This document shows positions 1,861-63,310 of a stretch of 64,000 bases of DNA, one piece after another. The notes under the pieces are model-generated. The model saw only the letters and a program-made list of their open reading frames with translations, ran no database searches and was not told the origin of the DNA. This DNA is from Selaginella moellendorffii (Eukaryota > Plantae > Lycopodiophyta): the NCBI RefSeq assembly GCF_000143415.4, contig NW_003314261.1:2925266-2989265 (forward strand). Direction: 5' to 3'. The translations under genes were made by a program, and so were the position numbers. How positions within the stretch are numbered: position 1 is the stretch's first letter; the number at the start of each line of letters is the position of its first letter.

Positions 1861-2606
1861 TATATGCAATGTAAGAAAATTGATTTGAAAAATAAATATT
1901 ATAATTCTAAAGTATGATAATTATGTTGATGGAGGCTAAGATTACTCCAGAATAAATAGTAAGATTGAGATAAAGAAGGTGTCTTTAATGGGTTTAGTGA
2001 AAACTAAACAAACAAAGGGAGAGAATCATCATATGTGATCTAATAAAACTTTAAGTTAGAGAGACTATGTTCTTTAGAGGATGGGAAAGGCATGGTAAGG
2101 CTCTAATGTTAAATATTAACTTGGTGCTAAAGAAAATAGTAATCCATGATAGAGCTACTTTATGAAATTGTTTATCACTCAATGAGGACATTGAACTTCA
2201 TCTATGGGTGGTGGATTTGTGAGACACAAATCCCTAAGCCCCAAAGTGGAGCCAAAAGGGTGCCATATAGTAGAAGATAAATAAGCATAATACATTTGGA
2301 CTAAAATCTCTAATTTGAAAAGTTGAGAGAAGAAGTGGAATTCCCAATGAAGTGCTCGAGGAATGAGCACGAAATGATCAATAAGTGAGCTTCTAGAAAA
2401 GGAACACAAGAGGACCAATATATAACATGTATATGTCAAAATCAAGTCTGAGATGGAGCTAAAATGGACTTAAGATGGAGTCTGAGAAAGAGTCCGAGAT
2501 GGACTCTAAAGTTAAAGTCTGAGAAGGAGTCTAAGATAAATGCAAAATGGAGTCCAAGAAGGAGTTCAAGATAAAGTCCAATTAGAGTTTAAAAGGAGTC
2601 TAAGAT

Positions 2607-3524
2607 TGTCACAAATATGACTTCGAATATCGAAAGATATTTGTTGGGTAGTCCTTATGGACACTCTTTCTTTACTGCCATGACGGTAGGAGGTTGGTAT
2701 TGCTGGTTCTTTTTATAGTCTCCACTCAAGCTAGTTGAGAAACTGGTCATTGCGTGTGCACTTGACTAGATGAGCATAAGGATGGAATTCCTAAATGCTA
2801 TTAGTCAAGTATACTTGACTTGATTAGAGAAACTCACTCGTTAACTTGCACTTGCTAGTGTTGGGAACCCCCAAGATATTAATATTAGTCCCTCAATATT
2901 GTTACATGGTAACTTACCATGTCCACCAAACACCCTTGCTATTATGTCTTATATGTTGATTTCGTTCCGAATCCATATGTTATTTATGGTAAATGTTTAA
3001 ATCTGTCCAAGAGGCATATCTACAAAATATAGAGTGTTCTAAGCCCTATGGTGTTGTTCCTGCATTCAGATTTGCAATCTAGCACCATTCCATATTTAGT
3101 AAGTTTCACACTTGTCTTAGAGACTAACTCCTGATACTAAGGGAGGCTAAGGGTGAAAGCCCAAAGCGTGTGTCCTCAACGGTACGGGGGTTATGGGGGT
3201 TTTAAATGTATAGTAGGGATAATGGTTGGAATGCAAGTCTGACCACATGAGACATTAGTTTGGCTCTCATTGGGTTGTGTCGCCCCTTGTTCTGCATCCA
3301 GCTTGGGTCTAAGCCCAAACTCCACACTGCTCTAGTTGGTGGGGTACCCTCCTCCTCGCGTTAGGCCACCGGTGTGCCAAAATCATGCTAAACACTGTTT
3401 AACACCATTTAGCATGTAGGTGCTAAATATGGGGAGCTAGTGGTCGTGGGATTGTGAGTGTATTGAACCCTTATTTCGTAACACAACAGGCTTGGAGTTC
3501 GGCTCCAAATTCAAGTGCGCTATA
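2607..3524 (+). mobile_element. Solo LTR, diverged family-B variant
   Basis: Starts TGTCAC and ends gtgcgctata; similar to LTR 44352-45495 except at the 3' end. Flanked by near-TSD aagat/gagat. Confidence 0.75.
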
Positions 3525-3792
3525 GAGATGGAGTCCGAGATGGAGCCCAAAGTTAAGTCCGAGATGGAAACCAATACTGGGTCCAAGATTGATACTAAGA
3601 CCCAGACCAAACCGAGCCTAAGGCCAAGAATGAGTCCAAATTTAAGACCGAGACTGAGACCAAGACTGAGTCCGAGTCCAAGGGTGAAAGCCCAAAGTGA
3701 TCATCTCCCAGACCCTAGGGGGTTTGATGAGCTCCAAAAAGATAATAAGGGGAGGACTCTAGTGGAATCAATTTGGCTAAGAATAGCTAGTG

Positions 3793-4937
3793 TGTAGTGC
3801 ACGTGGTTTTGACCCTTCATCCTATGGTGATTTACCATAGGATAACACCACGAAGCGGAACCTAAACCCTCTTTATGCCACGTGTCATATACCACGTGTC
3901 CAAAGAACAATGGTGCGGAACCCGAGGTTTAGGGCCTTGGGCCACTGAACGAAGGAACGGTGCCAAACTCCCAAGTATAGAGCCAAGGAGTGATGGAACC
4001 GGACCACGGAGCAACTCTCGAGCATATAGCCCAAGGAGCGAAGGGACAGGAGCCCGGAGCGACTTGGAATAGTCCTAGAGCAACCAACATCCTAATGCCA
4101 AGACTAGCACGTAAAACGCAGCCAAACAGAGTTTGGCACTATTTCAGCATACCAGTGGCATAACATGAGGATATAGGTACTCCACCAACTAGCATGGTGT
4201 GGAGCTTGGGCTTAGACCCAAGCCGGACACAGAACAAAGATAGGCACGCAAGCGGGAGCTAAACTATGCCTCAGGTTGGTCAGCCATGCCCAACCTACCC
4301 ACTATCCCTACTATACATTTGGAACCCCCCATATCCCCCCCCCCCCCCCCTCCCCCCCTTGAGGAACACACGCTTTGGGCTTTCACCCCAAGCCTCCCTT
4401 AGTATCAGGAGTTAGTCTCTGGGACAAGCTCAAAACTTACTAAATATGGAATGGCGCTAGATTGCGAATTTGGACACGGGATGAACACCATTGTGTTCAG
4501 GCCAATCTCTACATTCCATAGATATGCCAAATGAGCGAATCTAGACACTTTCCATAAATAGCATTTGGGACCGAAATGAGACTAACACAAAAGGCATGAT
4601 AGCGAGGGTGTTTGGCAGACACGGTAAGCTATCATCTAGTGATATTGAGGGACTAGTCTCAATACGCGAGGGTTCTTGTCAAGCTAGTGCAAGACAGAGC
4701 AAAAGAGAACTAAAAAGCCAGGCTAAGTATGCTTGGCTAAATAGACACTTAGAAATTCTGTCCTTATGCTCATCCGGCCAAGTACAGATGCAAAATCCAG
4801 TTTACTAACACTTGAATAAGAGGGGCTGATAAAGGGTCCAACAATACCGACCTCCTGCCATCATGGCAGTAAGGTAAGAGTGTCCGTAAGGACTAGCTGA
4901 TAGGTAACTTTCGATACCCGAAGTCACATTCGCGACA
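3793..4937 (-). mobile_element. Solo LTR, family B
   Basis: Reverse complement of LTR 44352-45495 with TG...CA ends and a perfect 5-bp TSD TAGTG (3788-3792 / 4938-4942). Confidence 0.92.
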
Positions 4938-4985
4938 TAGTGTGACCAAGGAAGGTTATACCCACAGAGTGGGTGATGATATAAT

Positions 4986-6340: not shown

Positions 6341-7121
6341 ATAATCATTGAGGAGTCCAAGGCTAAAGTGAATGCAAATAAACAAGTGGGGTAATTTGGT
6401 GAAGTGTTCAAGAACCATCTTTAGCTCCCCCAGGAAATTGAATGGTCAATGGTCCCAATCCAAGTGTGGGTGGCACTACATACTTGGATATCTAGCGTGG
6501 CTCATCAAAACCTTGCTATAGCCATATGGCTAGGGCACCCAAAGGTAGAAGGTGGGGAGAGTACCCACGAGGCTCACGTAAAGCCATGGTGTTTCGAAAT
6601 GTCATCCCAAAGTCCCAGACTGTGGAAAGAAAGAAGAGTGGACCTTTTGTGTAGTGATCAAGGGCATAGTCACGTGATGAGGAAGTCCTAGAGGTCAATG
6701 GGACTTGGTGGTAGGGCCTTTGGGCCCTACTCAGTGGCAGAGTTGGTGAACACTACTGAGGACGAAGTGGGATTTAGTAGGGACCAATGGAGGGATATTG
6801 GAGAAGGGTGTTCCTCGTGTTTCTAGGCATCATAAGGGTGTTAAAGTGTGGTCAAGGGATGACTACTTATGGATGGATGGCCTGATCTTTGGGAGATGGG
6901 TCTATAGTATGGGTGGTCTTGGACTACCAATGAGACAAAAGTGAATGGATATAATCTTAGTATAACAAGTTGATATGTCAATGGTATCTTTGGGTGTCTA
7001 TAGTGGGATTGGACACATGAAGCACTTAGACCAAGTGCAAATGTTGAGTGGCATAGATGCCATTCATAAGACTAGTATATCCCTAAGTCATGAATAAGAC
7101 TTATGGAGGTGGTGAGTGAAA

Positions 7122-10100
7122 TGTGAGACACAAAATCCCTAGGCCCCAAAGTGGAGCCGGAAGGGCGCCACATGGTAGTGGCTGAAGCGAGAGCCAAACG
7201 AGCGTAACACGTTTGGACCAAAAGCTCCGACTTGAGAAGTCAAGAGCGGGAGTGGAACTCCCAACGAAATGCTCGAGGAACGAGCACGAAGCGAGCAAAA
7301 GGCGAGGCTCCAAAAAGGGACCCAAAAGGACCAACACATGACATGTGGGAGTGTCCGAGATGGAGTCCGAAGTGGAGTCCGAGGTGGACCCGAGATGGAC
7401 CCGAGTTGGAGTCCGAAGTGGAGTCCGAGATGGAGTCCGAAGTGGAGTCCGAGGTGGACCCGAGATGGACCCGAGTTGGAGTCCAAAGTGGAGTCCGAGA
7501 TGGAGTCTGAGGTGGACCCGAGATGGACCCGAGCTGGAGTCCGAAGTGGAGTCCGAGATGGACCCGAGATGGAGTCCGAGATGGAGTCCGAGATGGAGTC
7601 CGAGGTGGACCCGAGATGGACCCAAAATGGAGTCCGAGATGGAGTCCGAGATGGACCCGAGATGGAGTCCGAGATGGAGTCTGAGATGGAGTCCGAGGTG
7701 GAGTCCGAGATGGAGTCCGAAGTCGAGACCGAGACCGGGACCGAGACCGAGACCGAGATCGGGACCGAGACCGAGACCGAGGCCGAGGCCGAGACCGAGC
7801 CCGAGCCCGAGTCGAGTCCGAACCCGAGTCCAAGTCCGAGTCCGAGTCCGAGTCCGGAGCCTGAGAGGGTGAAAGCCCAAAGCGTTCGTCTCCCAGACCC
7901 TGGGGGGTTTGGTGAGCTCCAAAAGTATAGTAGGGGGAGGACTGCAGTGGAGCCAGTTTGGCCAGGAAAGGCCAGTTTGGCCCAGGAAGGCCGGACCCAG
8001 TGTTGGGTGATGAGCTGCCCACTAGGAAGTCCAAGACTAGAGTGAACACGGACCGACAAGCGGGGTAGCTTGGTGAAGTGTTCAAGAGCCGGCTCTAGTT
8101 CCCCCGGGAGATCGACTGGCCGATGCTCCCAGTCCAAGTGTGGGTGGCACTACCTACTTGGATACCAGGCGTGGCTCAACGGAACCTCGCTCTAAGCCCA
8201 TGGCTAGAGCACCTAAAGGCGATAGGTGGGGAGAGTACCCAGGTGGCTCGCGTAAGGCCACGGTGTTCCGAAATGTCGTCCCAAAGGCCCAGACTGTGGG
8301 AAGGAAGAGGAGCAGTCCTCTGGGGTAGTGACCAAGGACACAGTCGTGTGGTGAGGAAGTCCCAGAGGACCGTGGGACTTAGTGGTCGGGCCTGTGGGCC
8401 TCGATCCAGTGGCAGTGTTGTCAAACACGGCCAGGGGCAGAAAGGGACTTGGTAGGAACTGACAAAGGGACTTTGGGGAAGGCGATTCCCCAGGTCTGTG
8501 GGCATCCTAAGGATGCTAAGGAGTGGATCTAGGATGACCTCTCATGGATAGGTGGTGCAGTCTTGGAGAGACGGGACGGTGATGCCAGTGGTATTGGACC
8601 ACTAGTGCAGCAGAGGTGAATGGGCATGGCCTTAGCAGAACGGGCCGAGATGTCAGTGGTACCTTTGGGTGTCGGTCGTGGGATCGGACACGTGGAGCAC
8701 TTGGACCAAGTGCAAAAGTTGAGTGGCATGGATGCCATTCTCGGGGCTAGCAAGCCCCAAGTCCTGAATGGGACTTATGGAGGTTGTGAATGAGACTCCT
8801 CCAAGTGGTCGGAGGTGTGGTTAAGTGACTAAAGTAGAATGGAAAAATTAGTCGCTTACAATTTGGTATCGGAGCTGTTCCTTAGTCCGACTTTTATTGG
8901 TGCTCAAGTATATCACCACTAGTGTTGGCATCGGAAGGTCCGAGGAGTGGGCCTATCCTTGAGGAGTAGCAAGTCGGGAAGACATGGCTCTCCATTACAG
9001 TTCATGTGTGAACTTGTAAACGAGGTGGTGGATAGAAAAGGGCCAATAATGGAACGACTTTGGGATCTTGGGAACAGTGCAAGGTTTTCCTCATTGAGTT
9101 GAGGATGTGATCCAGATGAGCGTTTGACTTAGCAAACTGGCTAATGTAGTTGTGGTAAACAACTACAGTTGGGATCACGGGAAAGATAAAGACTCCAAAG
9201 CAATAAAGGAGTCACAAGATTTTCCTCATATAGTTGAGGTTGGTGCTCATGAATGTGAGACCAGAAGTAATGACCGTGGGAGGTCAAATACGGAAGAGGA
9301 CTCAAGTCCTTGAAAAGGTAGCCAGGGCTACCTCTAATAAATGCTGGAACAACCCCAGGAGTTGGGGGTATATTAAGTGGATGAGTTAGTGTTCTCATCA
9401 CATGGACAAGTAGTCCTAAGGGGCAAAGGTTGCCCCCAGAGAACAAAATCAAGTGTCGGAGTAACACTTGTGAAAATAGTCCTTTTGAGTAGGACAGGAA
9501 TGCAAGAAGTGTATTCCAGTGAGCTAGTGCCTCACAAGTAGGACCTTACGGGTCTGTGGATTAACCAAGTCCAAAACTGCTGGATGACTCAAGTAGAGTC
9601 AACGGATGGTCCTAAAAGGACTGACGGAAGCATTTGGACTGAGGTGTGTTGTACCCCACAAAGGATGGGGGGGGATCATAGGATCCAAGGATGAGAACAA
9701 AGGGTATCTCATCGATGACAAAATATGCCATGCTAAAGTTATGGGAAAGGTGTTCCTAGAAGAAAACAACTTTGACATAAAGTTGTGTGTGACCTCTATG
9801 GGGCAGTGCTAACGGATGGTTGGCATGAGAAACAGCGGTGTTGGTCTTGGCAAAGACTTAGACACGAAGGGGAAATGTCATAGAGGTAGGCTCATGGAGC
9901 CGATGGTGTGGAGACACCAAATGTGCCAAGGTGTGATACTTTGAGGCTATGTTGGTGGGTTCATGAGAACCCCTTGCCAAAGGAATCCCAATGGAAATGG
10001 GAATGGCATAGCCTAAGCTGCAGAGCATGCAGTTGGAGTGTGGTGACCCAGATAATGATGGAGGTGTGAAAGCACCAAGCAATGAGTTGTAGGACTTGAC

Positions 10101-13100
10101 AACTATAAGGCAACTAAGCAAGAGGTGCAAAATAACTGGTTAAACGGGTAGAAGGTAGCTACCCAAGACTTCTTAATAGCATAAGGAAGTTGGATATACC
10201 CTTACGGGGGATAAGTTGCTTGTGTTGCGATATAGTAAGTCAATGTCATAAAAGAAAATACTCATTGTCAAGAAAGCCATCATTGGGACACTCAGACACT
10301 CTAGAACACCAGAAGGTGGTGTTTGATGTCACGAGGGCAATGGATAAAGCCCAAGGGACTAAATCCCTAGCGAATGATGGATAGAAGGTGCTATCCAAAT
10401 GTCCAAGGTTGCGGAGACAGGAGAGGACTGTCTACCCGAGTTGGACAAAGCCAAAAATGGAATTTTGGTAAGGCTAGTGATGGGCATGTAAAGGCCCGTA
10501 AGCAACAATGTAATCCCAGTGTGTGGGATTATAAGGTGAGCATACCCGGATTGAGGAACCACTCCCTAGGCTATTGGGTAGGTTCATCCCTAAGAATACT
10601 TGCTAAAGCGTGATAGAAAGTGCAAAGCTATCCTCCTGGTCTGGAGGAGAATGACCAAAGGAAAGGTGTGAAGCCAAAAAAGCAAGAAGTAAGGGGATAG
10701 AACCGAACCGTAGGAATCAAAGGGCATAACCAAGGTTGGTTATGCCAGCTGGGAGTGGAGAATCAAGTGGGGCTCAAGGGGGTTGTCGCTAGCAACCGTG
10801 ATGCCATGGAGAGTCTAAAATATGGAATTGTCCATGTTAGACTATGTGGCATTTGGAAGGCTTGCAAAAAGGGAGGCCTTAGCAAGCTGAGGGACAGAGT
10901 TCCTTCAAGGGTCCCAAAGACGATTCTAGGTAACTTAGTACCTAGAAAGGCCAAGTGTAAATGGTTCATGGAACGCGCGAAATCAGAGTGGCGCAGCAGA
11001 AGCGTGGTCTTGAAGCTTGCCATGAGGCAAGGCTATCAAGGTTAGGGAAGTAGTTCCCGAGTGTTCAAAGAGAGGGCTTTGAACGAAAGTCGATGGTCAA
11101 GGACTTTCACGCTTATGCAGGAACCATGTTACAGTGGTCGGAGGACTTGCCAAGCGAGATTGGCACGTCGGGGGAACAAGTACCCTAGTTGAAGGTGATA
11201 ACTTCAAAAAGGGTGGGCCATGGGGCCGAGCATGGAGGAGTCCGTGCATGATCACAGACATGTCAAGTGAGAGGACTTGGCAGTGTGGAGGAACTAGGTT
11301 CCTAAGCTGTGATCTGTAGCGCGCTTTAAAAATAAGTTGGTGCACCGGCGTGGGGAGTCACGCCAGGCATCTAGTGTGATGCCGTTCGTAGATGCATATA
11401 CAGAGGTTGGGTTCGAGTCCCGACCCTCTAGTGCTTGGGTTCGAGTCCCAAATCACTAGGGCGTGGTGATGGTTTGGAATATGAGGACACTCATATTTCG
11501 GTGGTCATGGACTCTCAGTGGGGAGACTGGTTTGGGCACACCGCCAAGCGAGGGATGCCTCGGAGTCGTGATGCACGATTAGATTGCTTAGTGTGAAAGC
11601 TCAGCATATCTAACTTGAACGCTTTGGTGCAAGTGGCACCAAGGTCGTGGTGAGTGAGATGGGGACACCTAATCTCAGTTGCTATGAACCCTTGGCCGTA
11701 AGGGCTGGCTTGGGTGCACCGCCAAGTGTGGGGGATGCCCCCGGGGTTATAATCAACAACTTGGAGGTCTAGAAGACCAAGTACCTCTTGGCAACTCTAT
11801 TAAGGTGCCAAGGTGAGATCACTAGGTGATCTTATGGCCAGATAAGGACAAGGTCCTTGGTTGGCTAAGGAATGAAGTTCCTGGTTCAAAATGTTGAAAT
11901 TGAACTATTTAAGGTGGTGTGGCTTGGTCGTGATAACCAAGTGGGAAGAGCACCTAAGGGAAATAAACTATGTCCGTGAGATGGCATAGTGAGTCCGAGG
12001 AAAGTAGTCTCCATAAAAGACCCATGGGAGGGTCACGAAGTTGGGCCGTGGATAGAGCCCATAGTAGAAGATGCTAAAGAGACGTACTAGGGGTGAACAT
12101 CCTCCGGACTTGGCAAAGAAGAATCTTTACTATGGAACCGAAACAATACCTCAAGGAGGGAGGTAGAGATTCAATGTTGCTTGGTGCAACAATCAACGGA
12201 TAGGAGCAAAAGATGAGTGGCCAAGATAGGGCCGTGGAATCCCTTGGGAGGAATCCAAGTGACAAAGTTAGGCGAGGAACACTAATGTGTTGGACGCTAA
12301 CAAGTTGCGGGAAAGGAAGTGTGTTTCCAAGGAGGGATTCCGAATTGCTCTGATTTGGCGAAAGTGGAAGCTCCAAGGGAGGGAGTGGTAAGATAGCCAA
12401 ATGATAGGGCGATGGACAACCCTAGCACAAAGTGTGATAAATGGAACTTAGTGCCCAAGGTGGCACGAAATAGAAGAGAGGATGATGGTGCCCTCAAGTA
12501 ATGAACTTCCTAGGATAGGGAAGTGGAGTTGCACAATCTGTGCAATGCAAGGTGTTGGAGACACCTAGGAAATTGACTTCCAAAAAGTCAAAAGAGTAAA
12601 AGTTCCAAGGTGCAAACATTCAATAGATGGAAATTGAGACTAATCAAGAAGGAGTAGTGGGATTGACTTAGAGAAGGGTCTCTAAGAGGTTTAGCGAGAA
12701 CTAAACCAATAAAAGGGGAGAACCATTACATGTGGTCCAATCAGTCTCTAAGTTGGAGAGACTACGCTCCTTAAAGGATGGACAAGGCATGGTGAGCCTT
12801 TGATGTCAAACCATAGACAAAGATTGGCTAGGTGCCAAGGATGGAAATGGTAACACGTGTGGGTGTTACTTTATGAAACGGTTTACCGTTCGATGAGGAC
12901 ATCGAACTTCGTCTATGGGTGGTGGAGTTGTGAGACACAAAATCCCTAGGCCCCAAAGTGGAGCCGGAAGGGCGCCACATGGTAGTGGCTGAAGCGAGAG
13001 CCAAACGAGCGTAACACGTTTGGACCAAAAGCTCCGACTTGAGAAGTCAAGAGCGGGAGTGGAACTCCCAACGAAGTGCTCGAGGAACGAGCACGAAGCG

Positions 13101-14667
13101 AGCAAAAGGCGAGGCTCCAAAAAGGGACCCAAAAGGACCAACACATGACATGTGGGAGTGTCCGAGATGGAGTCCGAAGTGGAGTCCGAGGTGGACCCGA
13201 GATGGACCCGAGTTGGAGTCCGAAGTGGAGTCCGAGATGGAGTCCGAAGTGGAGTCCGAGGTGGACCCGAGATGGACCCGAGTTGGAGTCCAAAGTGGAG
13301 TCCGAGATGGAGTCTGAGGTGGACCCGAGATGGACCCGAGCTGGAGTCCGAAGTGGAGTCCGAGATGGACCCGAGATGGAGTCCGAGATGGAGTCCGAGA
13401 TGGAGTCCGAGGTGGACCCGAGATGGACCCAAAATGGAGTCCGAGATGGAGTCCGAGATGGACCCGAGATGGAGTCCGAGATGGAGTCTGAGATGGAGTC
13501 CGAGGTGGAGTCCGAGATGGAGTCCGAAGTCGAGACCGAGACCGGGACCGAGACCGAGACCGAGATCGGGACCGAGACCGAGACCGAGGCCGAGGCCGAG
13601 ACCGAGCCCGAGCCCGAGTCGAGTCCGAACCCGAGTCCAAGTCCGAGTCCGAGTCCGAGTCCGGAGCCTGAGAGGGTGAAAGCCCAAAGCGTTCGTCTCC
13701 CAGACCCTGGGGGGTTTGGTGAGCTCCAAAAGTATAGTAGGGGGAGGACTGCAGTGGAGCCAGTTTGGCCAGGAAAGGCCAGTTTGGCCCAGGAAGGCCG
13801 GACCCAGTGTTGGGTGATGAGCTGCCCACTAGGAAGTCCAAGACTAGAGTGAACACGGACTGACAAGCGGGGTAGCTTGGTGAAGTGTTCAAGAGCCGGC
13901 TCTAGTTCCCCCGGGAGATCGACTGGCCGATGCTCCCAGTCCAAGTGTGGGTGGCACTACCTACTTGGATACCAGGCGTGGCTCAACGGAACCTCGCTCT
14001 AAGCCCATGGCTAGAGCACCTAAAGGCGATAGGTGGGGAGAGTACCCAGGTGGCTCGCGTAAGGCCACGGTGTTCCGAAATGTCGTCCCAAAGGCCCAGA
14101 CTGTGGGAAGGAAGAGGAGCAGTCCTCTGGGGTAGTGACCAAGGACACAGTCGTGTGGTGAGGAAGTCCCAGAGGACCGTGGGACTTAGTGGTCGGGCCT
14201 GTGGGCCTCGATCCAGTGGCAGTGTTGTCAAACACGGCCAGGGGCAGAAAGGGACTTGGTAGGAACTGACAAAGGGACTTTGGGGAAGGCGATTCCCCAG
14301 GTCTGTGGGCATCCTAAGGATGCTAAGGAGTGGATCTAGGATGACCTCTCATGGATAGGTGGTGCAGTCTTGGAGAGACGGGACGGTGATGCCAGTGGTA
14401 TTGGACCACTAGTGCAGCAGAGGTGAATGGGCATGGCCTTAGCAGAACGGGCCGAGATGTCAGTGGTACCTTTGGGTGTTGGTCGTGGGATCGGACACGT
14501 GGAGCACTTGGACCAAGTGCAAAAGTTGAGTGGCATGGATGCCATTCTCGGGGCTAGCAAGCCCCAAGTCCTGAATGGGACTTATGGAGGTTGTGAATGA
14601 GACTCCTCCAAGTGGTCGGAGGTGTGGTTAAGTGACTAAAGTAGAATGGAAAAATTAGTCGCTTACA
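7122..14667 (+). mobile_element. Young, complete non-autonomous (LARD-like) LTR retrotransposon, family A
   Basis: LTRs 7122-8860 and 12929-14667 are 1739 bp each; I found only 3 substitutions between them. TSD TGAAA on both sides, PBS tggtatcggagc at 8864-8875, PPT-like gggtggtggag at ~12917-12927. The 4.07 kb internal region has no ORF over ~110 aa. Confidence 0.95.
7352..7862. repeat. GC-rich minisatellite inside the family-A LTR (12-bp gagatgga(gt/cc)cc units followed by 6-bp gag(a/c/t)cc units)
   Basis: Directly visible tandem units. Also present at 13159-13669, 5221-5705, 2445-2606/3525-3680 and 1435-1519. Confidence 0.95.
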
Positions 14668-14737
14668 TGAAACTCCTCCAAGTAGTCAAATGTGTGGTTA
14701 AGTGACTAAAATAAAATGGAAAATTTAGTCACTTACA

Positions 14738-16046
14738 GTATGTCATAAGAGTGCAAAGTTTTATTAGTGCTTCACCATATAAACTCCTATATAGTCATGA
14801 TCCAATACTATTAATAGAGTTGAGTTTACCTTCATGATTGCCAAAAGCTGTTAATACTATGTCTTAGGATTAGTATTTGATAAACATTCTTCCACTTATC
14901 TAAGCAGAGTTTGCCAAAAACCTAGGCTATGTACAAGTGGGACAACAATAATGCTACAACTCCCATCATCATCCACCTGCAGAATACAAAATGGATAACT
15001 TGGTGTTATTCTGTTTTCCCAATTTTATGGTATATGGTTTATCTAAAGGGCTTATTGTTTAATAGAAGGGACCATATCAGGTGCTACTGTAAGCAACCAA
15101 AAGGAACAACTCAAAATATGATTCATAGGGGTTCAAATATAGAAGGAAAAGGCCCATGAACAAATGTGTACCCCTTTGTTCAATCGATTAAGAGTTTTGG
15201 GATACTTGAGGTTAAATGTCTTTGGGTTTGAATAGTATTGGGTTAGTGAAATCTCAAGAAGTCTAAATCAAAGAGTTTATATTTGGTATTAGAGGGGTCT
15301 TAAGTTTGACTTTATTAGTTGACTTAGAGGAATTGCACCACATGTTGATTGATATCTGGTAAGTTTATTTTGCTCTGGCTAGGCTCGACCCAAGGGGTAG
15401 GGTGTCAAGAGAGCATGGCTCTTGGGAAAGTTGCAGTTCTCAACTTTCATTCACAAAGGTGTGAACTTGCAAGAAAGTGTGATGGATTATAAACAACTAA
15501 AAGAAACGACTCAAGAGATGATCCATAGGGGTTTAAATATAAAAGAAAAGAGCCCATGAATAAAGGTGCACCCCATTTTCTAATCAGTTAAGGGCCTTGG
15601 GATACTTGGGATTAAGTGTCATTGGGTTTGAATAATATTGGGTTAGGTGACCTCTTAGGAAGTCCAAATCGAGGAGCTTACAGTTATGGTAAATTAGACC
15701 ACAAATTTATGAGGTTTGGCATGATATCCAACAAATAAATCCTCCAGAAATTATACATGTGTAATGGCTGAAATGCTTTGTACAAAGGGATCATGAACAA
15801 TTGGCACCACTTACAAATCCATTGATACCTCCTCCTAATGTTCCTCTAGATCCTGACCCATCCACTATAAAAGGTCCAAGCATACAATTATAATGCCATA
15901 TACTAATATTAGTATAGTGGGATTTTAATAAATGTCAGATTGGTTTCAATCCAAACCACTTGCTTCTGTATATAAAGAGCAAGTGATAGTTTAGGCTAAT
16001 TGATATGCACATTTCTGTATTCCATTTCCATATTCCATGCACTCAT
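14738..16046 (+). mobile_element. Old Ty3/gypsy family-D remnant (integrase 3' end plus 3' LTR ~15866-16046), interrupted by a TRIM
   Basis: 14738-15087 and 15683-16046 are collinear with 62530-63277 of the family-D element. Confidence 0.8.
15088..15682 (+). mobile_element. Complete, aged Cassandra-type TRIM
   Basis: LTRs 15088-15281 and 15488-15682 (~194 bp) each carry a decayed 5S rRNA-like segment. Internal domain ~206 bp with PBS tggtattagag. Degenerate TSD gctac/gttat. Confidence 0.85.
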
Positions 16047-23986: not shown

Positions 23987-25463
23987 TTATTCATCGTCTT
24001 CGTCTTCGTCATCTTGATCGTCGTCCTCATCTTCGTCTTCCTCATCTTCGTCAATCCTCTCGTCCTCGTTCTCCTCGTCCTTGTCATCGCTTGGCTCGCT
24101 CTGCGCGTCCCTCTCTTCGCTCAGTGTGATCTCCACCTGTTTCATCGTCCTCTGGAGCTTGAGCAGGCCGTCGGCAAACTTCCATCCCTTGGACTTGTCC
24201 TTGACGCAAATCGACAGCTTTTCCAGCAACGCACATCTCCTGACCAGATTGTTGAGTACTTCCAGGCTCTTCTCGTCCACCCACGGCATATGAATAACAA
24301 TTCTCTTTAGTGGAAGCTCCGGCAGCTCCTCCATTCTACAGCACCTCAAACACTGCATAATCACAAAGAAAACACTGTAAAAAACAAGCTTTTGTAAAAG
24401 AAAGACATGGAAGAACCTTGAAGAGATCTCCGCCAATCTCAAGCCCACTCCAGTTGGCCATGCAGCCGAAAAACTTTAACGGAGCAACCTTCTCGATCTT
24501 GTTCAATGCAGCAGGAATAGCGACCGACTTGATCGCAGTTTTCTCGAGGCCACCAATCGCAGCAGCCACGTCCGGCAGCGTCCATTCCCCCTCCTCGCTT
24601 GATTCTAGCACCAGCTTCTCTAAACTAGATCCCCTTGGAAGCCCAATCACGCAGGGAGACCGCACTACAATCTTCCCCACTCCACTGGCCTTGACGACGA
24701 GCTTCGTCACCCACTTGACGCAGATCACCTCCACCTTGGGATCCTTCTCCCCTCTCGCAGACAGCGTGAAGACGGTGAGCGCCTCCTGGAAGCTGAGAAA
24801 GATGGTGGTGAGCTCCGTGTGCCTAATGTAAGGCGACCCGAGCCCCGTGCAGTCGCAAATGTCGAGATAATTTAGAACCGGGCAGAGCTCCATGATGCCT
24901 TCGAGTGCCTCGTCTGTGATACACACGTCGTTGAGGGTGAAAGACGTGAGTCTCTTGAGCGGCGTGGCTTCGCCAGGCACGCGATCGATATGGTAGTATG
25001 AGAGAGATACCTCCTTGAGAAGCTGGCACTTGAAGATCTCGAGAAGCTTGTTGCCCATCTGCACGAATCCCTCCCCGTCCTCCTCGAGAGTGAGGCACTC
25101 GAGCGTGGAATTCACCGCTCGCAGCCACATGCACACCGCCCCGACCCCAAACTCGGGCCCTGTGATGTGGAGATCCTGGACTCCACACGTCGTGGCGCCG
25201 ATCGTCCGCCCTATGAAGGATTCCAGCAGCGGCACGCGCTTGGCGTCCTTCTTTACCTTCTTCACCAGATCGGCGCAGGAGAAATCCAGGTAGTCGACGC
25301 CCCGGAAGAGCATCCGCCAGCGGCGACAGACGAGGCGGCAGGGCGCGATCTTGTGGAGCGGCCCGATCTCGCCGAAAATGCGGCAGACGAGCGCGTCGGG
25401 GAGAGCTTGGAAGTAGTCCTTTGCGGGCGCCATCACGGCCTCCCTGCTCGCGTTCCCTCTCAT
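23987..25463 (-). CDS. F-box/LRR-repeat protein with an acidic C-terminal tail (2 exons)
   Basis: F-box motif LPDALVCRIF...CRLVCRRWR and LRR-like repeats (ITDEALEGIMELCPVLNYLDICDC). Intron at ~24339-24416; D/E-rich end. Confidence 0.88.
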
Positions 25464-25615: not shown

Positions 25616-26470
25616 TCATTCTTTCACTTTGTTGGAGGCCCACACAGCGACTTGCTCGTCACTCCTATACAGCACCAAATTCCTATCGTTTTGGAGCACT
25701 AGGACCGACGAGACCAGCTCGCCCGAGACGACCCCGCTATCGATAGTCCACAAACACACGCTCTCGTTCTCAAACACCACTCTTCCATCTACCCTCACTC
25801 GCAAGTAGCAATTTCGATTGGCGCCAATCGAGATTAGAGGCCTCCACACCACGATGTTCCCTTCCATGAGCTCTTTGCAATCAAAGCCCAGCACCAATAG
25901 CCCATTGCGAGAGACGAGATAGGATCCCGGCGTGAGCCTGGAGTAGCTCCTCGCCTTTGGGCCGCTCTGGATCATGTTCGAGTAGGGATAGCATGCCTGG
26001 CCGCCATGGACGATCACTGGAGCCCCCTCTCTTGCCACCTCTAACTCCTCGTTGGCCTCCTTGAGAGCGTACTCCATTCCAAATCTCCCATCGATTGCGG
26101 TGATGTAGCTGTAGCCCCATTCGATCAAAGCGTCGGAGACAACGTCGTGGAGATCATGGAAGGCGCGGACGAGCTCGAATCCCTGCATTGCGTCGGCGTC
26201 AGGGTTACCAGCCGTGGCATCGCAGCCGGCAGTGAAGAACCAGAGGCGGAGGAAGCACTCCTGGCCGTTTACTATCACGGTGTCCGAGAAGGACCGGGGC
26301 ATATGGCGGCCAAGGTTGATTGTGTTGACGAGCGTAGCCAGGCCACTCACAACAACGATGCGAAAGCTGGGAACGATTCTGCGAGGGATGCCCTTGTCGA
26401 AGATGTCCACGGCTTTGCTCCTCGTAGAAAGATAAATGGTGATGGCTGTCATCAGCACAAATCGATCCAT
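25616..26470 (-). CDS. Secreted protein: unknown N-terminal domain plus bulb-type (B/GNA) lectin domain, copy 1
   Basis: Signal-like N-terminus. The C-terminal B-lectin has YLVSRNG and an intact QxDxNxVxY motif (QNDRNLVLY), then VWASN. Small in-frame deletions relative to copy 2. Confidence 0.82.
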   Translation of the reverse strand: MDRFVLMTAITIYLSTRSKAVDIFDKGIPRRIVPSFRIVVVSGLATLVNTINLGRHMPRSFSDTVIVNGQECFLRLWFFTAGCDATAGNPDADAMQGFELVRAFHDLHDVVSDALIEWGYSYITAIDGRFGMEYALKEANEELEVAREGAPVIVHGGQACYPYSNMIQSGPKARSYSRLTPGSYLVSRNGLLVLGFDCKELMEGNIVVWRPLISIGANRNCYLRVRVDGRVVFENESVCLWTIDSGVVSGELVSSVLVLQNDRNLVLYRSDEQVAVWASNKVKE

Positions 26471-26714
26471 TAGGGAATTCAATGGTCGAGCTTTCCTATG
26501 CAAATTCTTTCTTATATTGCATTCTGACGCGTCAATCTTCTAGAACAGACAAATCAAGGGCCAGAAGGTCATTCTAAGGACAAATTTCTAGTGGAAATTT
26601 TGCCACTAATAATATAGATTTGCTTTGTGCCCTTACAATACTGCATTGTTCACCTCACTAACTTCTAATCTTCATTTCTTCATTGGTAGCCGCTGTAAAG
26701 CTGTGACCAATGGA

Positions 26715-27250
26715 ATAGAAAAATCAGCATTCGCAAGCAAAGTCTGTCCACATCCAGGAGGCCCAAAGAACAAAGACTCCTGTGGACGGCGACATCCCGA
26801 ACTTCTCAAACTTCTCAACTGGAAATTGCACAGTGGCACAAATTCCAGCCCAACGGCGTCCAGCTACTAACAAACACTCAACTCTTGAAGCTCCCTCTTG
26901 ACGTTCTCAAGGCCATCAATGTAACAATAGGCACTTCAGCCACCTAAAAGGAAAACATTATTTCAAGTCAAGTGCAGAAGGGTTGCTCGTTCCCAAAGCT
27001 GTCTGCTCGTTCGTTATAGCCATCGAGCTGAGAACTTCGGCATCCATAGTCTCGTCTCAAGGTCAATCACGTCCATCTTTTCGTATCGACTTGGTGCATA
27101 GGGCAGCAAGGCCCGGGCCAAACGAAGCCGTGCGTATTTTCTCCAAATCCACCTGCAGAAGCAAATGCGAGTTCAGTAGCTAATACATTTCATACATCTT
27201 CCGCGAGCTTCATGAGCCCTCAGCCTCGACTAGGGTTACTTCCAGACCGC
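26715..27250 (-). pseudogene. CDC48: CDC48/p97 AAA-ATPase gene fragment
   Basis: The minus strand gives broken but recognisable peptides MKLAEDV, VDLEKI, EKMDVIDLE, MDAEVLSSMAITNE, TALGTSNPSAL, GLENVKRELQE, EKFEKFGMSPS and FFGPPGCGQTLLA. Frameshifts are present and introns are retained. Confidence 0.85.
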
Positions 27251-27366
27251 TTTTTCGGAGAGATCGCTCCACAAGATCATCCGAACAAAATTACCGTAAA
27301 CTTGAAGATCCATCCAGAGACCTAGATCGCGCATAATTACCGTAAATTTGAAGATTATCAGAAGCC

Positions 27367-28239
27367 TTAGATTTTCCATTCTTTCACTGTGTTGGATGCC
27401 CACACAGCGACTTGCTCGTCACTCCTATACAGCACCAAATTCCTATCGTTTTGGAGCACTAGGACCGACGAGACCAGCTCGCCCGAGACGACCCCGCTAT
27501 CGATGGTCCACAAACACACGCTCTCGTTCTCAAACACCACTCTTCCATCTAGCCTCACTCGCAAGTAGCAATTTCGATTGGCGCCAATCGAGATTAGAGG
27601 CCTCCACACCACGATGTTCCCTTCCATGAGCTCCAGGTTGCAATCAAAGCCCAGCACCAGCATGTATAGCCCATTGCGAGAGACGAGATAGGATCCCGGC
27701 GTGAGCCTGGAGTAGCGCCTCGCCTTTGGGCCGCTCTGGATCATGTTCGAGTAGGGATAGCATGCCTGGCCGCCATGGACGATCACTGGAGCCCCCTCCC
27801 CTGCCACCTCCAACTCCTCGTTGGCCTCCTTGAGAGCGTACTCCATTCCAAATCGCCCATCGATTGCGGTGATGTAGCTGTAGCCCCACTGGATCACAGC
27901 GTCGCCCACAACATCGTGGAGATCACGGAAGGCGCTGATAAGCTGGAATCCCTGCATTGCGTCGGCGTTGGGGTTACCAGGCGTGGCATCGCAGCCGGCG
28001 GTGAAGAACCAGAGGCGGAGGAAGCACTCCTGGCCGTCTACTGTCACGGTGTCCGAGAAGGATCGGGGCATATGGAGGCCATGGCTGATTGTGTTGACGA
28101 GCGTGGCCAGGCCGCTAAGAACAACAGTGCGAAAGTTGGGACCGATTTTGCGAGGGATGCCCTTGTCGAAGATGTCCACGGCTTTGCCCCTCGTAGAAAG
28201 ATAAATGGTGATGGTTGTCATCAGCAAAAGCCGATCCAT
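27367..28239 (-). CDS. Secreted protein: unknown N-terminal domain plus B-lectin domain, copy 2
   Basis: Intronless 290-aa ORF, tandem paralog of 25616-26470, with the same lectin motifs. Confidence 0.85.
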   Translation of the reverse strand: MDRLLLMTTITIYLSTRGKAVDIFDKGIPRKIGPNFRTVVLSGLATLVNTISHGLHMPRSFSDTVTVDGQECFLRLWFFTAGCDATPGNPNADAMQGFQLISAFRDLHDVVGDAVIQWGYSYITAIDGRFGMEYALKEANEELEVAGEGAPVIVHGGQACYPYSNMIQSGPKARRYSRLTPGSYLVSRNGLYMLVLGFDCNLELMEGNIVVWRPLISIGANRNCYLRVRLDGRVVFENESVCLWTIDSGVVSGELVSSVLVLQNDRNLVLYRSDEQVAVWASNTVKEWKI

Positions 28240-29466: not shown

Positions 29467-31068
29467 ATGCAAGCACGAACCAAGTTGCTGTTCTTCGTCA
29501 AAGTTCCAGTCCGGTGGTATACGGCGAAGCACGTCGATCACGCTTTGGAAACAGCTCTAAATTCAGTGTTGGAGCACACCAAAGAAGCTTATCTTCCTCT
29601 GCTGCGCGCCTGTGACAAACTCTCGAGCCTGAGGAAGATCCACCAGCAGATGATCCAGAAGAAAGTCTTGGTTGACAAGCTGCTCAAGAACGTCCTGATT
29701 GACATGTATGGCAAGTGTGGCGGCTTGGACGAGTCCCGAGCAGTGTTCCAGTCGATACAAGACCGCGACGGACCCAACGTTTTCTCGTGGACAGTGTTGA
29801 TCTCAGCTTATGCCCGGAACGGGCATAACAACGTAGCTCTAGATCTCTTCCACCGCATGGAGCTGGCTGGAGTTCGAGCGAGCGAAGCCACTCTAGTCAT
29901 CGCTGTCGGAATTTGCAGCAAGCTTGGAGCTCCTCACGGCCTACGAATCGGGAAGAGACTCCACCAGCGAATCGAGGCCCAAGTCTCGATGAACTTGATG
30001 ACTGCTCTCCTTGATATGTACTCGAAGTGTGGGTGTCAGGGAGAAGCCAGAGAAATCTTCCAGAGTTTCCAGACTACCGACAGTGTGTGGTGGACTGCGA
30101 TGATGGATGCGTTGGTTCGATGCGGTGATCCCAGTGGGGCGCTAAACTTGCGACGTCGAATGGCCATCGAAGGCATTCCAGCAAACACTGTCACCTTTGT
30201 TGTCGCACTCACTGCCTGTTCTTGCTGTTCTTGCGGCTCCTTGTCCCGAAAGGTGGCGAGCCAGATCCACGACGAAATCTCTTCCCGGGGCCTGGACTCC
30301 AATCCCGTGCTGGCCTCTGCACTCGTCAGCGTCTATGGCAAGCATGACAACTTCCAAAAGTCTTGGAAAGTTTTCCAGGATATTGGGAGCTCGAGAAGGA
30401 GCTTGTCATGCTGGAACTCGATGGTGCTCACTTGCGCTCGGCATGGCTTCCACGAGAGAGTTCTCGATCTGTACTCCCAGATGTCGGTGGAGGGATCGGT
30501 CGTCCCAGACGAGATAACTTTCAGCATCGTCTTGAGCTGCTGCCAGAGAATCGAAGATGGCGAAAAGATCCTCTCGGAGGCCGCGGCTGCCGCTTGCGAC
30601 CAATTCGATCAAGTGAGGAGCGCTGCCATCGATTTCTATGCCCGCATTGGCGATTTGGGGAGCTCCAAGCATGTATTCGAGAAAGACTCCCACTGTCGGA
30701 GCCTGAGCTGCTGGAATGCCCTGATTGGGGCATACTCACATCACGGCTATGGCCGCCAATCCCTCGATCTCGTGCTGAGGATGAAAATCGAGGGAGTCAT
30801 GCCGGATCAACTGACCTTCATGTCGGCAATGTTTGCCTCGAGCCACACGGGACTGGTGGAACGAGGCCTGGAATGCTTCCTGGAGATGGAGGCCGAGCAT
30901 GGGATTGTCCCAAGCCCCGAGCACTGCCGCTGCTTGATTGATCTCCTGGGCCGCGCCGGCCAGATCGAGGGGGCGGAAGCGATGCTTGAGGAGGATCCGT
31001 GTGAGATGGAGTGGAGTATTCTCGTGGGCGCCCGCAAGAACCTGGCCGACGAAGAAGCCCTAACCTAG
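29467..31068 (+). CDS. PLS-class pentatricopeptide repeat protein (no DYW domain)
   Basis: Repeated LIDMYGKCG / SWTVLISAYARNG / WNALIGAYSHHG motifs and terminal HCRCLIDLLGRAG; intronless. Confidence 0.93.
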   Translation: MQARTKLLFFVKVPVRWYTAKHVDHALETALNSVLEHTKEAYLPLLRACDKLSSLRKIHQQMIQKKVLVDKLLKNVLIDMYGKCGGLDESRAVFQSIQDRDGPNVFSWTVLISAYARNGHNNVALDLFHRMELAGVRASEATLVIAVGICSKLGAPHGLRIGKRLHQRIEAQVSMNLMTALLDMYSKCGCQGEAREIFQSFQTTDSVWWTAMMDALVRCGDPSGALNLRRRMAIEGIPANTVTFVVALTACSCCSCGSLSRKVASQIHDEISSRGLDSNPVLASALVSVYGKHDNFQKSWKVFQDIGSSRRSLSCWNSMVLTCARHGFHERVLDLYSQMSVEGSVVPDEITFSIVLSCCQRIEDGEKILSEAAAAACDQFDQVRSAAIDFYARIGDLGSSKHVFEKDSHCRSLSCWNALIGAYSHHGYGRQSLDLVLRMKIEGVMPDQLTFMSAMFASSHTGLVERGLECFLEMEAEHGIVPSPEHCRCLIDLLGRAGQIEGAEAMLEEDPCEMEWSILVGARKNLADEEALT

Positions 31069-33403: not shown

Positions 33404-35377
33404 TCACCACCTTCGCCTGTTGTGATCTCCTTGGTTCCGTCCGGGAGCTTGACGCTTGTTCTCATTCGGGAAGAAACTCTTAGTGGCAATATAACGGGGC
33501 CTTGGATTGTTCCATCCCGGCGGAGGAGGGCAGTTCGGCTCCACTGGTCTTCGCAGCATATAGAGCTCCTCTTTCGAGTAGCGTACCACATGATACCCTT
33601 TCTTCTCGCTTGAGACAATGGCCTGCTTGAGAAGCTTGATCATGTTCCACTTCCATCCAGCGGGATCAACTGGAAACCCAAAGATCCGGAGGAAAACATC
33701 GTATGCCTTGACGCTGTAGATGTCCTTGATGGTCTGGAGAAGCTGCGAGCTCATCTCGCCCGATGGGAACCCGTACCTCTGGTCGAAGTTCGTTGATCTC
33801 GTCATACGGAAGAAGCAAATCTGGAACATCACCAGCCTGAGGCCGTCGGCATTTGCCTCAAACGTGTGCTGGAGACGGACCTCCGAGGGGAAGTTGTCCG
33901 GCTCCACGTACGCGAGGTATGGCTTCTTCTGCAGGGCCCAGAGGGTGTTCCTGGTGAGAATCTCGCCCAAGAACAGCCCGCATACTTTGTCCCACTCCAC
34001 GGCATTGGGAGCTACCAGCAAATACGTTAAGAACTCGCCCAGGTCGGGGACGTGATCCTTGCCGCGACACTCGATATTGGAGATGAACGCGTCAACCTTG
34101 CGCTGAATTTCCCGTCTCAGGTAATGGTGCTCCCGCACCAGCTTGGAGAAGAGGTGGAACAGCAGGCAGTAGCCTTGTAGTGCCTTCTCCGAAGCGTGGA
34201 CAACTGTGTGGTTGCTGAGCTCGCTCTTCTGCCGATCGCAAGACTGGACGAGCGTGAAAACCATGGTGTTCATCAGCGCAGGCAGCGTCTGGAGAACCAC
34301 CGAAATTGGCGCTGCCGAGGCCGTCGGTTTCCTGGGAAAGCTGAGAGCAAGGCTCTTGAGCGAGTCGTCTATCAGCGGTCTGGCACGCTGGAAGTGATCC
34401 TCGTCCAGAACCAGCGGGAGGAAGTAATCAAAATCCTCGCCCGTGATGCCCTTCCTCACGCCATGGCTCTTAAACGCCTCGTATGACAAGAGATCAACCG
34501 CTGCCACAAAGGGCTTTCCACCGCCGGCCGGGCACGACACTCCAATCCCCAGGACCGTGTCGCTCTCCTTGAAAGTCTTGCGCAGAAAGAAGCAAACCAG
34601 CTGCCGGCGCAGCAGCAAGTTCTCCGAGTTGATGAGCTCTTTCACGCCGCTGTAGACCCGAGTCAGCCGTATGGCATCCTGGTCTGAGAGCCTGTCCACG
34701 ATCTCGAGGCAGCAATCAGCGTCCAGCCTCTCGAAAAGGTTGGGACTCTCCACCAGAGAGAGATGATCATCAAACTCACCTTCAATCATAGCCGGACTAG
34801 TGACAGAAGTCGACTCTGGAGCGCTCTTCACACCAGGAAAAGCAACGTTGAATCCACAGTTAGCACACGAGTAGCGCTTCACCCAATCCAATGGATCCAA
34901 GGGGTCAAAGCTATGTTCCCTTTGGGAATAGCTCTCCAGCTCCACTGCCTTGCCACCATAGTCCTGCTGCACAAACTTGCTACTAAAGAAGCTGAGAAGC
35001 TGGAGAAAGAGGTACTTGAGCAAGTAGCCCGGGGTGTAACCGCCATTGTAGATTTGCCAATGACCGCCCTGAGGATTGTAGTCATACCTCGTGGAAACCG
35101 GCTTGAGGATGTCGCAGCAGATGAAGGAGCCGAAGACGTTGGGGTGTCGGACGGGCGTCTGGATGGTAACCTGCGGAGGGCCGTGAGGATAGTCAGCTGG
35201 TATGCGGACGTCGAGGTGGAGGTTGACGCCCGCGTAGGGGCCGCTGAGCGGCGAGAGGACGAGGCACATATGGTCGAGCTGGTCGGCATAGGTGCAAACC
35301 TGGATGCCCTGGAGCGGCTCCTTGGTCAGCTCCGTGAGGTCGCGCTGGACTCGGACTTGCCATGACTTGGTGCTCAT
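33404..35377 (-). CDS. Large intronless protein: ubiquitin-conjugating (E2) domain, F-box-like segment and long uncharacterised C-terminal region
   Basis: UBC motifs RVQRDLTEL, GPYAG, IPADYPHGPPQV, HPNV and active-site region ICCDIL; F-box-like FERLDADCCLEIVDRLSDQDAIRL. First true ATG at 35377, but the frame is open to 35497, so an upstream exon is possible. Confidence 0.85.
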   Translation of the reverse strand: MSTKSWQVRVQRDLTELTKEPLQGIQVCTYADQLDHMCLVLSPLSGPYAGVNLHLDVRIPADYPHGPPQVTIQTPVRHPNVFGSFICCDILKPVSTRYDYNPQGGHWQIYNGGYTPGYLLKYLFLQLLSFFSSKFVQQDYGGKAVELESYSQREHSFDPLDPLDWVKRYSCANCGFNVAFPGVKSAPESTSVTSPAMIEGEFDDHLSLVESPNLFERLDADCCLEIVDRLSDQDAIRLTRVYSGVKELINSENLLLRRQLVCFFLRKTFKESDTVLGIGVSCPAGGGKPFVAAVDLLSYEAFKSHGVRKGITGEDFDYFLPLVLDEDHFQRARPLIDDSLKSLALSFPRKPTASAAPISVVLQTLPALMNTMVFTLVQSCDRQKSELSNHTVVHASEKALQGYCLLFHLFSKLVREHHYLRREIQRKVDAFISNIECRGKDHVPDLGEFLTYLLVAPNAVEWDKVCGLFLGEILTRNTLWALQKKPYLAYVEPDNFPSEVRLQHTFEANADGLRLVMFQICFFRMTRSTNFDQRYGFPSGEMSSQLLQTIKDIYSVKAYDVFLRIFGFPVDPAGWKWNMIKLLKQAIVSSEKKGYHVVRYSKEELYMLRRPVEPNCPPPPGWNNPRPRYIATKSFFPNENKRQAPGRNQGDHNRRRW

Positions 35378-35732
35378 TGAAACCCGGCTACATCCTTGGC
35401 CCCGCCGGCTTAAGTATCCAGGATTTCCCTGTCCTCCAAGGATGCAATGTTCTATCTTTAAGTTAGCACGATCCAATTTGGATTTTAATTGCTGCAAAAA
35501 GTTTTAGAAGAATGACCAGAAGTTGCCCAGCAAGAGAGGAGTTTTGAAAGAAAACAAAAATTATTTGTTCGCTCAAACATAATGCAAGTCAACATAGTCA
35601 ATGCAAAAGTTCAAGACTGTTGACTTAGTACCTTGATGATTCTCATCCGGAATGTGGGAGGGCATTCTGGTCCGGAATGGCGAGCATGTGTGATAGCCGT
35701 GGAGGGCATTCCACCAATCGCTACACACGGGG

Positions 35733-54348: not shown

Positions 54349-54448
54349 NNNNNNNNNNNNNNNNNNNNNNNNNNNNNNNNNNNNNNNNNNNNNNNNNNNN
54401 NNNNNNNNNNNNNNNNNNNNNNNNNNNNNNNNNNNNNNNNNNNNNNNN
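54349..54448. other. Assembly gap (100 N)
   Basis: Run of N. Confidence 1.
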
Positions 54449-58224: not shown

Positions 58225-58267
58225 CCAAATTTTAAAATGAATATACATATCAATTTAAAATTTGATT

Positions 58268-63277: not shown

Positions 63278-63310
63278 GACTTAATTGATAGCAATATTTA
63301 TAATATATAT

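Follow-up and report, generated by a model that had tools for sequence, protein, structure and literature searches.

Cassandra elements are TRIMs (terminal-repeat retrotransposons in miniature) that carry 5S rRNA sequence (Kalendar 2008, as cited in PMC10886601 and PMC10853983), and which machinery mobilises them is a question left unanswered in the searchable papers (PMC10886601). The stretch of the Selaginella moellendorffii genome analysed here (64,000 nt of contig NW_003314261.1, positions 2,925,266 to 2,989,265 of the forward strand; hereafter the window, by whose own numbering all positions are given) raises that question again. It holds Cassandra-like TRIMs together with a large non-coding element bounded by long terminal repeats (LTRs), family A, whose leader shares sequence with the TRIM interior. 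Is the large element the parent of the TRIM, its helper, or neither? We consider it probable that the TRIM and family A carry related cis-acting replication modules, and this similarity of sequence points to a common or related helper. The two share a primer-binding site (PBS) of the tRNA-iMet type, about 55 nt following it, and a module made of a hairpin and a G/T-rich tract. In the TRIM these lie at both ends of an interior of about 200 nt, and in family A within the first 170 nt of the interior; family A has a second, related polypurine tract (PPT) module at its real 3' end.

The first 16 kb of the window are a nest of LTR elements, and an older A-type LTR was the insertion site of the young family-A element, which is laid out as follows.

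7117-7121, no strand: left copy of the target-site duplication (TSD) TGAAA flanking family A, by direct reading
7122-14667, plus strand: young family-A element, 7546 bp, delimited by self-comparison
7122-8860, plus strand: 5' LTR, 1739 nt, TGTGAG...GCTTACA
about 7330-7880: 12-nt tandem repeats (families D1 and D2) in the 5' LTR
8864-8875, plus strand: PBS TGGTATCGGAGC, tRNA-iMet type with G at position 8
8876-8930, plus strand: segment after the PBS, homologous to the first part of the Cassandra-like interior (control-based alignment)
8931-8998, plus strand: leader middle, with blocks ordered as in Cassandra and similarity that is at chance level when taken alone
8999-9033, plus strand: internal PPT-like module, consisting of hairpin AGTTCA-TGTG-TGAACT (8999-9014), spacer and GGTGGTGGA-T (9024-9033)
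9034-12889, plus strand: body of the internal domain, non-coding
12890-12928, plus strand: true PPT module, consisting of hairpin TCGATG-AGGA-CATCGA (12890-12905), spacer and GGTGGTGGA-GT at the 3' LTR
12929-14667, plus strand: 3' LTR (blastn against the 5' LTR)
14668-14672, no strand: right copy of the TSD TGAAA, directly after the 3' LTR

The two LTRs are 99.83% identical (blastn, 7122-8860 against 12929-14667), the PBS sits 3 nt past the 5' LTR and the PPT module borders directly on the 3' LTR, so that paired LTRs, PBS, PPT and TSD mark a bona fide retrotransposed unit. In the 4.07-kb interior the longest open reading frame (ORF) has at most 114 codons and each frame contains 74-81 stops; 10 interior ORFs gave no Pfam match at E up to 1, and tblastx of the interior against the window's gag-pol element or against another LTR family of the window, family B, returned nothing better than E 0.15. 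Because the interior has neither ORFs, Pfam matches nor gag-pol similarity, we assign family A to the non-autonomous large retrotransposon derivatives (LARDs), whose size is set at more than 4 kb (as quoted in PMC13570524) and which lack gag or pol capacity. It resembles them in size, in its long LTRs, in its conserved non-coding interior and in its copy number, and among the features tested only the Cassandra-like leader sets it apart. Family A is very high in copy number in the organism's DNA (contigs and reads of four runs), and among the contigs listed one, about 85% alike, spans 8881-9038; a search for further copies through exact or similar ORF products found none. The initial annotation had cast the large element as a candidate parent or partner of the TRIM. 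In a helper pair, the partner encodes Gag, reverse transcriptase, RNase H and integrase; family A cannot be that helper because it encodes nothing.

Sequencing runs contain weak sense-strand RNA over the U5 region and leader of family A. The 12-nt tandem arrays of its LTRs, found also at 13140-13690, are the only place of RNA read pile-up, and the loose ends of these reads lead into G+C-rich sequence that is unrelated; repeats related to the arrays seem to exist in an expressed locus elsewhere.

Three Cassandra-like copies lie in the window.

15088-15682, plus strand: C2, complete TRIM with LTRs at 15088-15281 and 15488-15682, the pair 81% identical
15284-15295, plus strand: PBS of C2
15296-15487, plus strand: interior of C2
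15450-15465, plus strand: pre-PPT hairpin of C2
1520 to about 1856, plus strand: C1, truncated TRIM with LTR at 1520-1712 and PBS at 1715-1726, 78% identical to C2 over 331 nt
63300-63833, minus strand: C3, decayed copy with PBS at 63637-63626, matching the Cassandra interior profile at nhmmer E 1.6e-29

C2 has the makeup of a TRIM: 595 bp, hence less than 1 kb, direct terminal repeats (194 and 195 nt) and, between them, 206 nt of interior with a PBS at one end and, at the other, a PPT block that abuts the 3' LTR. It shares with known Cassandra TRIMs its size, its LTRs of about 194 nt, a tRNA-iMet-type PBS, the absence of coding sequence and a 5-bp duplication. Cassandra elements also have a 5S rRNA-like stretch in the LTR. 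Here the match of the C1 LTR to the Rfam 5S_rRNA family RF00001 scores 24.6 bits, short of the gathering score of 38 (E 0.0073 in 451 nt), and lacks 32 model positions, with an internal deletion; because this match is sub-threshold we speak of Cassandra-like copies. At gathering thresholds Rfam had no matches in the whole window, and at E up to 1 the C2 region and its LTRs, which are 78-81% identical to the C1 LTR, gave none. Further differences from known Cassandra TRIMs are the lycophyte host and a PPT that is G/T-rich and not purine-only.

A paralogue without C2 exists at about 62875, inside the gag-pol element (14739-15853 compared with 62531-63045). The unoccupied site has GTTGT once and C2 is flanked by GCTAC and GTTAT, a decayed 5-nt duplication; the pair of sites is a clean record of an insertion that duplicated 5 bp. 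Before C1 stands the start of an A-type LTR (1200-1519, ~320 nt); after it, with nothing between, come the final ~350 nt of an A-type interior, hairpin and PPT included, and then a new A-type LTR from 2218. By its sequence, the segment 1200-2565 is a Cassandra/LARD composite with a different LTR type at each end. We examined the joint between C1 and the A-type sequence as a possible chimera of reverse transcription and set this aside; a deletion is at least as likely, because the LTR types differ at the two ends and the locus is heavily rearranged.

How far does the likeness between the leader of family A and the TRIM interior extend, and does it exceed chance? The same PBS had been claimed for both, and TGGTATCGGAGC is exact at 1715-1726 in C1 and at 8864-8875 in family A; the short blocks named downstream of it are all present as well. 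Dinucleotide shuffling of the leaders, a check proposed along with these claims, gave z of 4 to 6. As further controls we took real segments of matching length, drawn from either strand of the window and excluding the elements themselves. With local and semi-global alignment, three scoring schemes and 3058 controls, the family-A leader after the PBS (8876-9034) was matched by no control against C1 in any scheme; against C2 no control reached its score in two schemes and 10 of 3058 did in the third. With C2 alone as the nhmmer query, this leader was the top non-Cassandra match, collinear over query positions 12-188. The same blocks might also have occurred in unrelated LTR families; for the leader they did not, since the leaders of three other LTR families of the window (B, E and G) scored at control level against Cassandra.

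When the leader was tested in parts, the signal of the Cassandra interior was located in the first ~55 nt after the PBS and in the last ~35 nt. Both were significant: 8876-8930 was equalled by none of 4918 controls against C1 and by 22 of 4918 against C2, and 9001-9034 by none of 4934 against C2. In the ~52 nt that follow the PBS, the gapped identity between family A and C1 is 72%, the same as between C1 and C2. The shared ends are spaced 159 nt apart in family A and 192 nt in the TRIM. Past 9034, homology into the Cassandra LTR was not significant.

The second of these shared ends belongs to a module with one build in four places, namely the internal and the true module of family A, an old A-type copy (2179-2217) and C2 (15450-15487). 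Each has a 6-bp stem with a 4-nt loop and, 20-23 nt after the hairpin, a G/T-rich tract, GGTGGTGGA in the A modules and GTGATGGA in C2, to which the LTR is directly joined in the true PPT modules. The resemblance of the internal tract to the true PPT, noted in the initial annotation, is exact over nine letters (GGTGGTGGA at 9024-9032 and again at 12918-12926); all three occurrences of the 9-mer in the window coincide with an A-type PPT or PPT-like site, and family A thus has an internal copy of its 3' PPT sequence, as a second PPT would be. Compared as 60-nt blocks with 4908 controls, the internal module of family A was matched by no control against the C2 block and by 1-5 against the element's own true module. 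It shares 87% of aligned positions with the PPT module of family A itself and 82% with that of C2, with which it has GTGTGAACTTG in identical form. The true module has 90% identity with the older A-type one (2179-2217), and against the PPT block of family B only 0-4 of 4908 controls reached its score. Seen as a possible TRIM-helper pair, then, the 5' interior end of the TRIM matches family A, and its clear 3' match is the internal module, not the true PPT.

The hairpin in front of the PPT is common to family A (twice), Cassandra and family B, a second young non-coding LARD.

44352-51643, plus strand: family B, with TSD GACTC, PBS TGGTATCAGAGG and a purine-rich PPT
50464-50479, plus strand: pre-PPT hairpin of family B, TCGACG-AGGA-CGTCGA, nearly the same as in the true module of family A

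Covariation in the fold had been suggested as a check; in this hairpin four of the six pairs change on both sides, and the covariation score is reached by 1 of 500 shuffles. In a five-module alignment the hairpin is paired in 93% of cells, compared with 18-36% with slid partners. Thermodynamic folding of single modules gave weak z-scores (-0.15 to -2.7), so we relied on the pair counts. CpG transitions, possibly due to decay, account for some of the changes between the two A copies; the differences among the true A module, family B and C2 comprise transversions as well, and changes that set young copies apart. Since CpG decay does not explain these, the stem looks maintained.

A second fold involves the PBS itself.

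8869-8890, plus strand: candidate PBS hairpin, 3' half of the PBS TCGGA (8869-8873) with TCCGA (8886-8890), from RNAalifold

It is fully paired in all four sequences, compared with at most 60% in slid controls, as TCGGA-TCCGA in family A and C1 and as TCAGA or TTAGA with TTTGA in C3 and C2. One pair is changed on both sides, at two CpG sites, and 75 of 500 shuffles reach the covariation score, which is not significant; for both reasons the PBS hairpin is treated as a lead only. We also considered whether the PBS-proximal block extends complementarity to the T-arm of the tRNA and rejected this on comparison with the plant tRNA-iMet sequence. The window holds no tRNA genes.

Several results weigh against related modules in the TRIM and family A. 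The leader middle alone (8931-9000, with the blocks aggtcc, tgggc..gagg.gtag and catggctct) is at chance level, with 928 of 4914 controls reaching its score against C2 and 1107 of 4914 against C1. Against the decayed C3 the leader was not significant, and in the whole-window nhmmer search its E-value was just 0.39; it was not reported with a three-copy Cassandra profile, which is devoid of PPT columns because C1 and C3 lack them, or with a query of interior plus LTR. The PPT block of C2 is not significantly similar to the true module of family A (2294 of 4908 controls), and the old A-type copy is the only one apart from the internal module that comes near significance with it (40-45 of 4908, about 1%). 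The apparent covariation of the PBS hairpin could be CpG decay. The material consists of single copies, one A leader and three old Cassandra interiors, and the window holds no helper with these signals, its sole gag-pol element being of another kind. The claim that the whole internal domain of the TRIM is collinear with the leader is therefore overstated, because only the two ends carry signal: these are homologous, and the ~70 nt between them are not distinguishable from chance. The related proposal of one shared priming signal stands in the same measure, for the post-PBS segment and for the hairpin-PPT module, with unrelated families lacking a leader match, and not for the middle.

Could chance and convergent constraint suffice? 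The primer tRNA would fix the PBS and the self-complementary block next to it, and the preference of reverse transcriptase and RNase H would fix the PPT and its hairpin. The behaviour of the leader middle and the whole-window E-value are what this account expects, as is family B, which has the hairpin architecture without leader similarity. The LTR ends agree with it too. That both LTR types end in GCTTACA, as had been pointed out, is real, if weak as evidence. The U5 ends of family A and Cassandra are weakly similar, with a score that 80-111 of 5506 controls attain; their U3 starts are unrelated, and beyond the terminal GCTTACA the LTRs have no significant similarity. Such constraint does not account for the first 55 nt, which beat 4918 of 4918 controls against C1 and include tattggt and caccac..tgttg outside the hairpin, or for the identity of GTGTGAACTTG in the internal module and C2; and family B, also with a tRNA-iMet-type PBS, has no such similarity. 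We regard convergence as improbable.

A parental role for family A fares worse, and we give it very little credence. The TRIM would have arisen from an A-like element by a plus-strand start at the internal PPT, as the initial annotation suggested, or by deletion between the two PPT modules. The internal tract does have the 9-nt core of the true PPT and a hairpin upstream, and an origin of a rice TRIM by deletion between duplicated internal sequences is documented (PMC4717578). Either route would keep A-type LTRs or start new ones at about 9034; priming at the internal PPT predicts LTRs that begin there and end as the A LTR does. The model fails because the TRIM LTRs are 194 nt long, 5S-like and unrelated to those of family A, which at 1739 nt are neither homologous nor similar in size, as the LTRs of a parent and its deletion derivative would be. 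Among the joints listed from reads and contigs, there was none from about 9033 to an LTR start, a weak negative, and none of an A-LTR mini-element. The Cassandra copies are also far older (81% for the LTR pair) than this A copy, a comparison of single copies and not of families.

Might family A instead be the recipient? As a chimera, it would have an A-type 5' LTR followed by a captured PBS-to-PPT cassette of a Cassandra-type element or mini-TRIM; a template switch at the common PBS, during reverse transcription of co-packaged RNAs, could for instance have joined them, and the internal PPT-like module would be a relic of the donor's PPT. Family A has the two ends of the TRIM interior in the right order and similarly spaced, its internal module stops exactly where the 3' LTR of a TRIM would start, and C1 is physically joined to A-type sequence in the window. 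Yet after 9033 there is no trace of a Cassandra LTR, the leader middle is not demonstrably Cassandra-like, and the element's own PPT module (87%) resembles the internal one no less than that of C2 does (82%), so that an internal duplication of the element's own module fits equally well. We think such a capture unlikely, if less so than convergence.

We therefore return to related replication modules in TRIM and LARD as the favoured account. An autonomous element would recognise the modules with its Gag, reverse transcriptase/RNase H and integrase, and one helper, or several closely related ones, may mobilise the TRIM, family A and in part family B in trans. The modules could have come to be shared by common descent or by recombination between co-copied RNAs. 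We favour mobilisation in trans because shared signals of this kind are read, in TRIM biology, as a sign that the elements depend on one machinery or on related ones. Family A would then be a fellow parasite, neither the helper nor, by any simple route, the parent of the TRIM, in what may be a multi-tier parasite system of TRIM, LARD and helper. A bolder version, which we put forward only tentatively and think unlikely, is that the A leader, from PBS and post-PBS segment to hairpin and PPT, is a complete, working Cassandra-type cassette whose internal PPT serves as a second plus-strand origin, and that the TRIM, family A and, by way of the hairpin, family B share one autonomous element, probably a chromovirus. 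If true, parasites would form a layered network in a lycophyte, and the signals held in common would reveal the long-sought helper of Cassandra.

The window has a single gag-pol element, which is Ty3-gypsy-like.

58269-63277: element G, with LTRs of about 175 nt at 58269-58442 and 63104-63277

It contains a gag ORF (58719-59438) and an RNase H ORF (61079-61756), and has another PBS, a purine-rich PPT and other LTR ends than family A and Cassandra; it is no candidate for the helper. Its 3' part is involved in an inverted duplication of 1.56 kb with 91% identity (56672-58229 and 61725-63286).

The partner of Cassandra was said not to be established, and no helper is named in the searchable literature to date, which gives no indication of an autonomous family behind Cassandra (Kojima 2024, PMC10886601). 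A TRIM interior that corresponds to both ends of a larger element's interior is an accepted sign of a relationship in trans (PMC10886601, PMC4717578). In Helenus, for example, the interior of the TRIM LTR-1_PTrit consists of the 5' 198 bp and the 3' 12 bp of the Copia-9_PGr interior, with unrelated LTRs (PMC10886601). Helenus/Copia-9_PGr, SMART/FRetro64 and OsajRetroS10/OsajLTRA10 share with our pair the correspondence of interior ends, and in the first two the LTRs are unrelated, as here (PMC10886601, PMC4717578). Unlike in our pair, the larger element in those cases encodes gag-pol and is a candidate helper; here it is non-coding and both matching ends lie in its 5' leader. Among Carduoideae, Cassandra-related elements without 5S sequence share part of the interior of canonical Cassandra and have LTRs of different sequence and length (Maiwald 2024, PMC10853983), much as family A relates to the TRIM. 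Those elements are TRIM-sized, whereas family A is a 7.5-kb LARD with 1.74-kb LTRs, has the shared parts in its first 170 nt and includes a second PPT-like module among them. The Cassandra hosts in the same study are monocots, dicots and ferns (PMC10853983). For spikemoss, Gao 2016 (PMC4717578) described eight TRIM subfamilies, none named Cassandra among those in the supplement, and one Ty3-gypsy partner for another spikemoss TRIM. The kind of relation is thus already known, given these precedents, and what is new is the host lineage, the LARD as partner and the internal PPT module.

That module has its own parallel. HIV-1 and yeast Ty1 have a central or second PPT, located mid-genome inside pol and shown to prime plus strands. 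Like it, the internal tract of family A is a copy of the 3' PPT core; unlike it, the candidate tract belongs to a non-coding element and is 160 nt away from the PBS.

The sharing of replication signals by a LARD and a TRIM despite unrelated LTRs supports mobilisation in trans without LTR homology. Although the locus leaves the helper unnamed, it provides a searchable signature, consisting of the PBS variant, the post-PBS segment of ~55 nt, the pre-PPT hairpin, the GGTGGTGGA-type PPT and the GCTTACA end. Being common to two otherwise unrelated non-coding families, this signature permits a direct search for gag-pol carriers. A shorter pattern, the PBS followed after 9-10 nt by TCCGAC, was found in 84 metagenome contigs, mostly gut or environmental, and these were taken as chance because none extends beyond the pattern.

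The other non-coding LARD, family B, has LTRs of about 1145 nt that are 99-100% identical over the compared 300-nt segments, and no ORF of at least 100 aa lies wholly inside its interior. Its tRNA-iMet-type PBS has A, not G, at position 8, and its leader is unrelated to Cassandra. Older B-type LTR copies are located at 2603-3522 (plus strand) and 3789-4941 (minus strand).

Host genes occupy the region between the repeat nests (17220-55947), which also includes an assembly gap.

24339-25463, minus strand: F-box/LRR ORF
29467-31065: PPR protein
33407-35497, minus strand: ubiquitin-conjugating-type ORF
54349-54448: assembly gap, 100 N
55054-55947, minus strand: syntaxin

Direct repeats of ~600 nt are found at 25617-28000 with a spacing of 1760-1770 nt, each followed by a PBS-like TGGCATCGCAGC (26215 and 27984). 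They may represent a small LTR element in tandem, in the order LTR-interior-LTR-interior.

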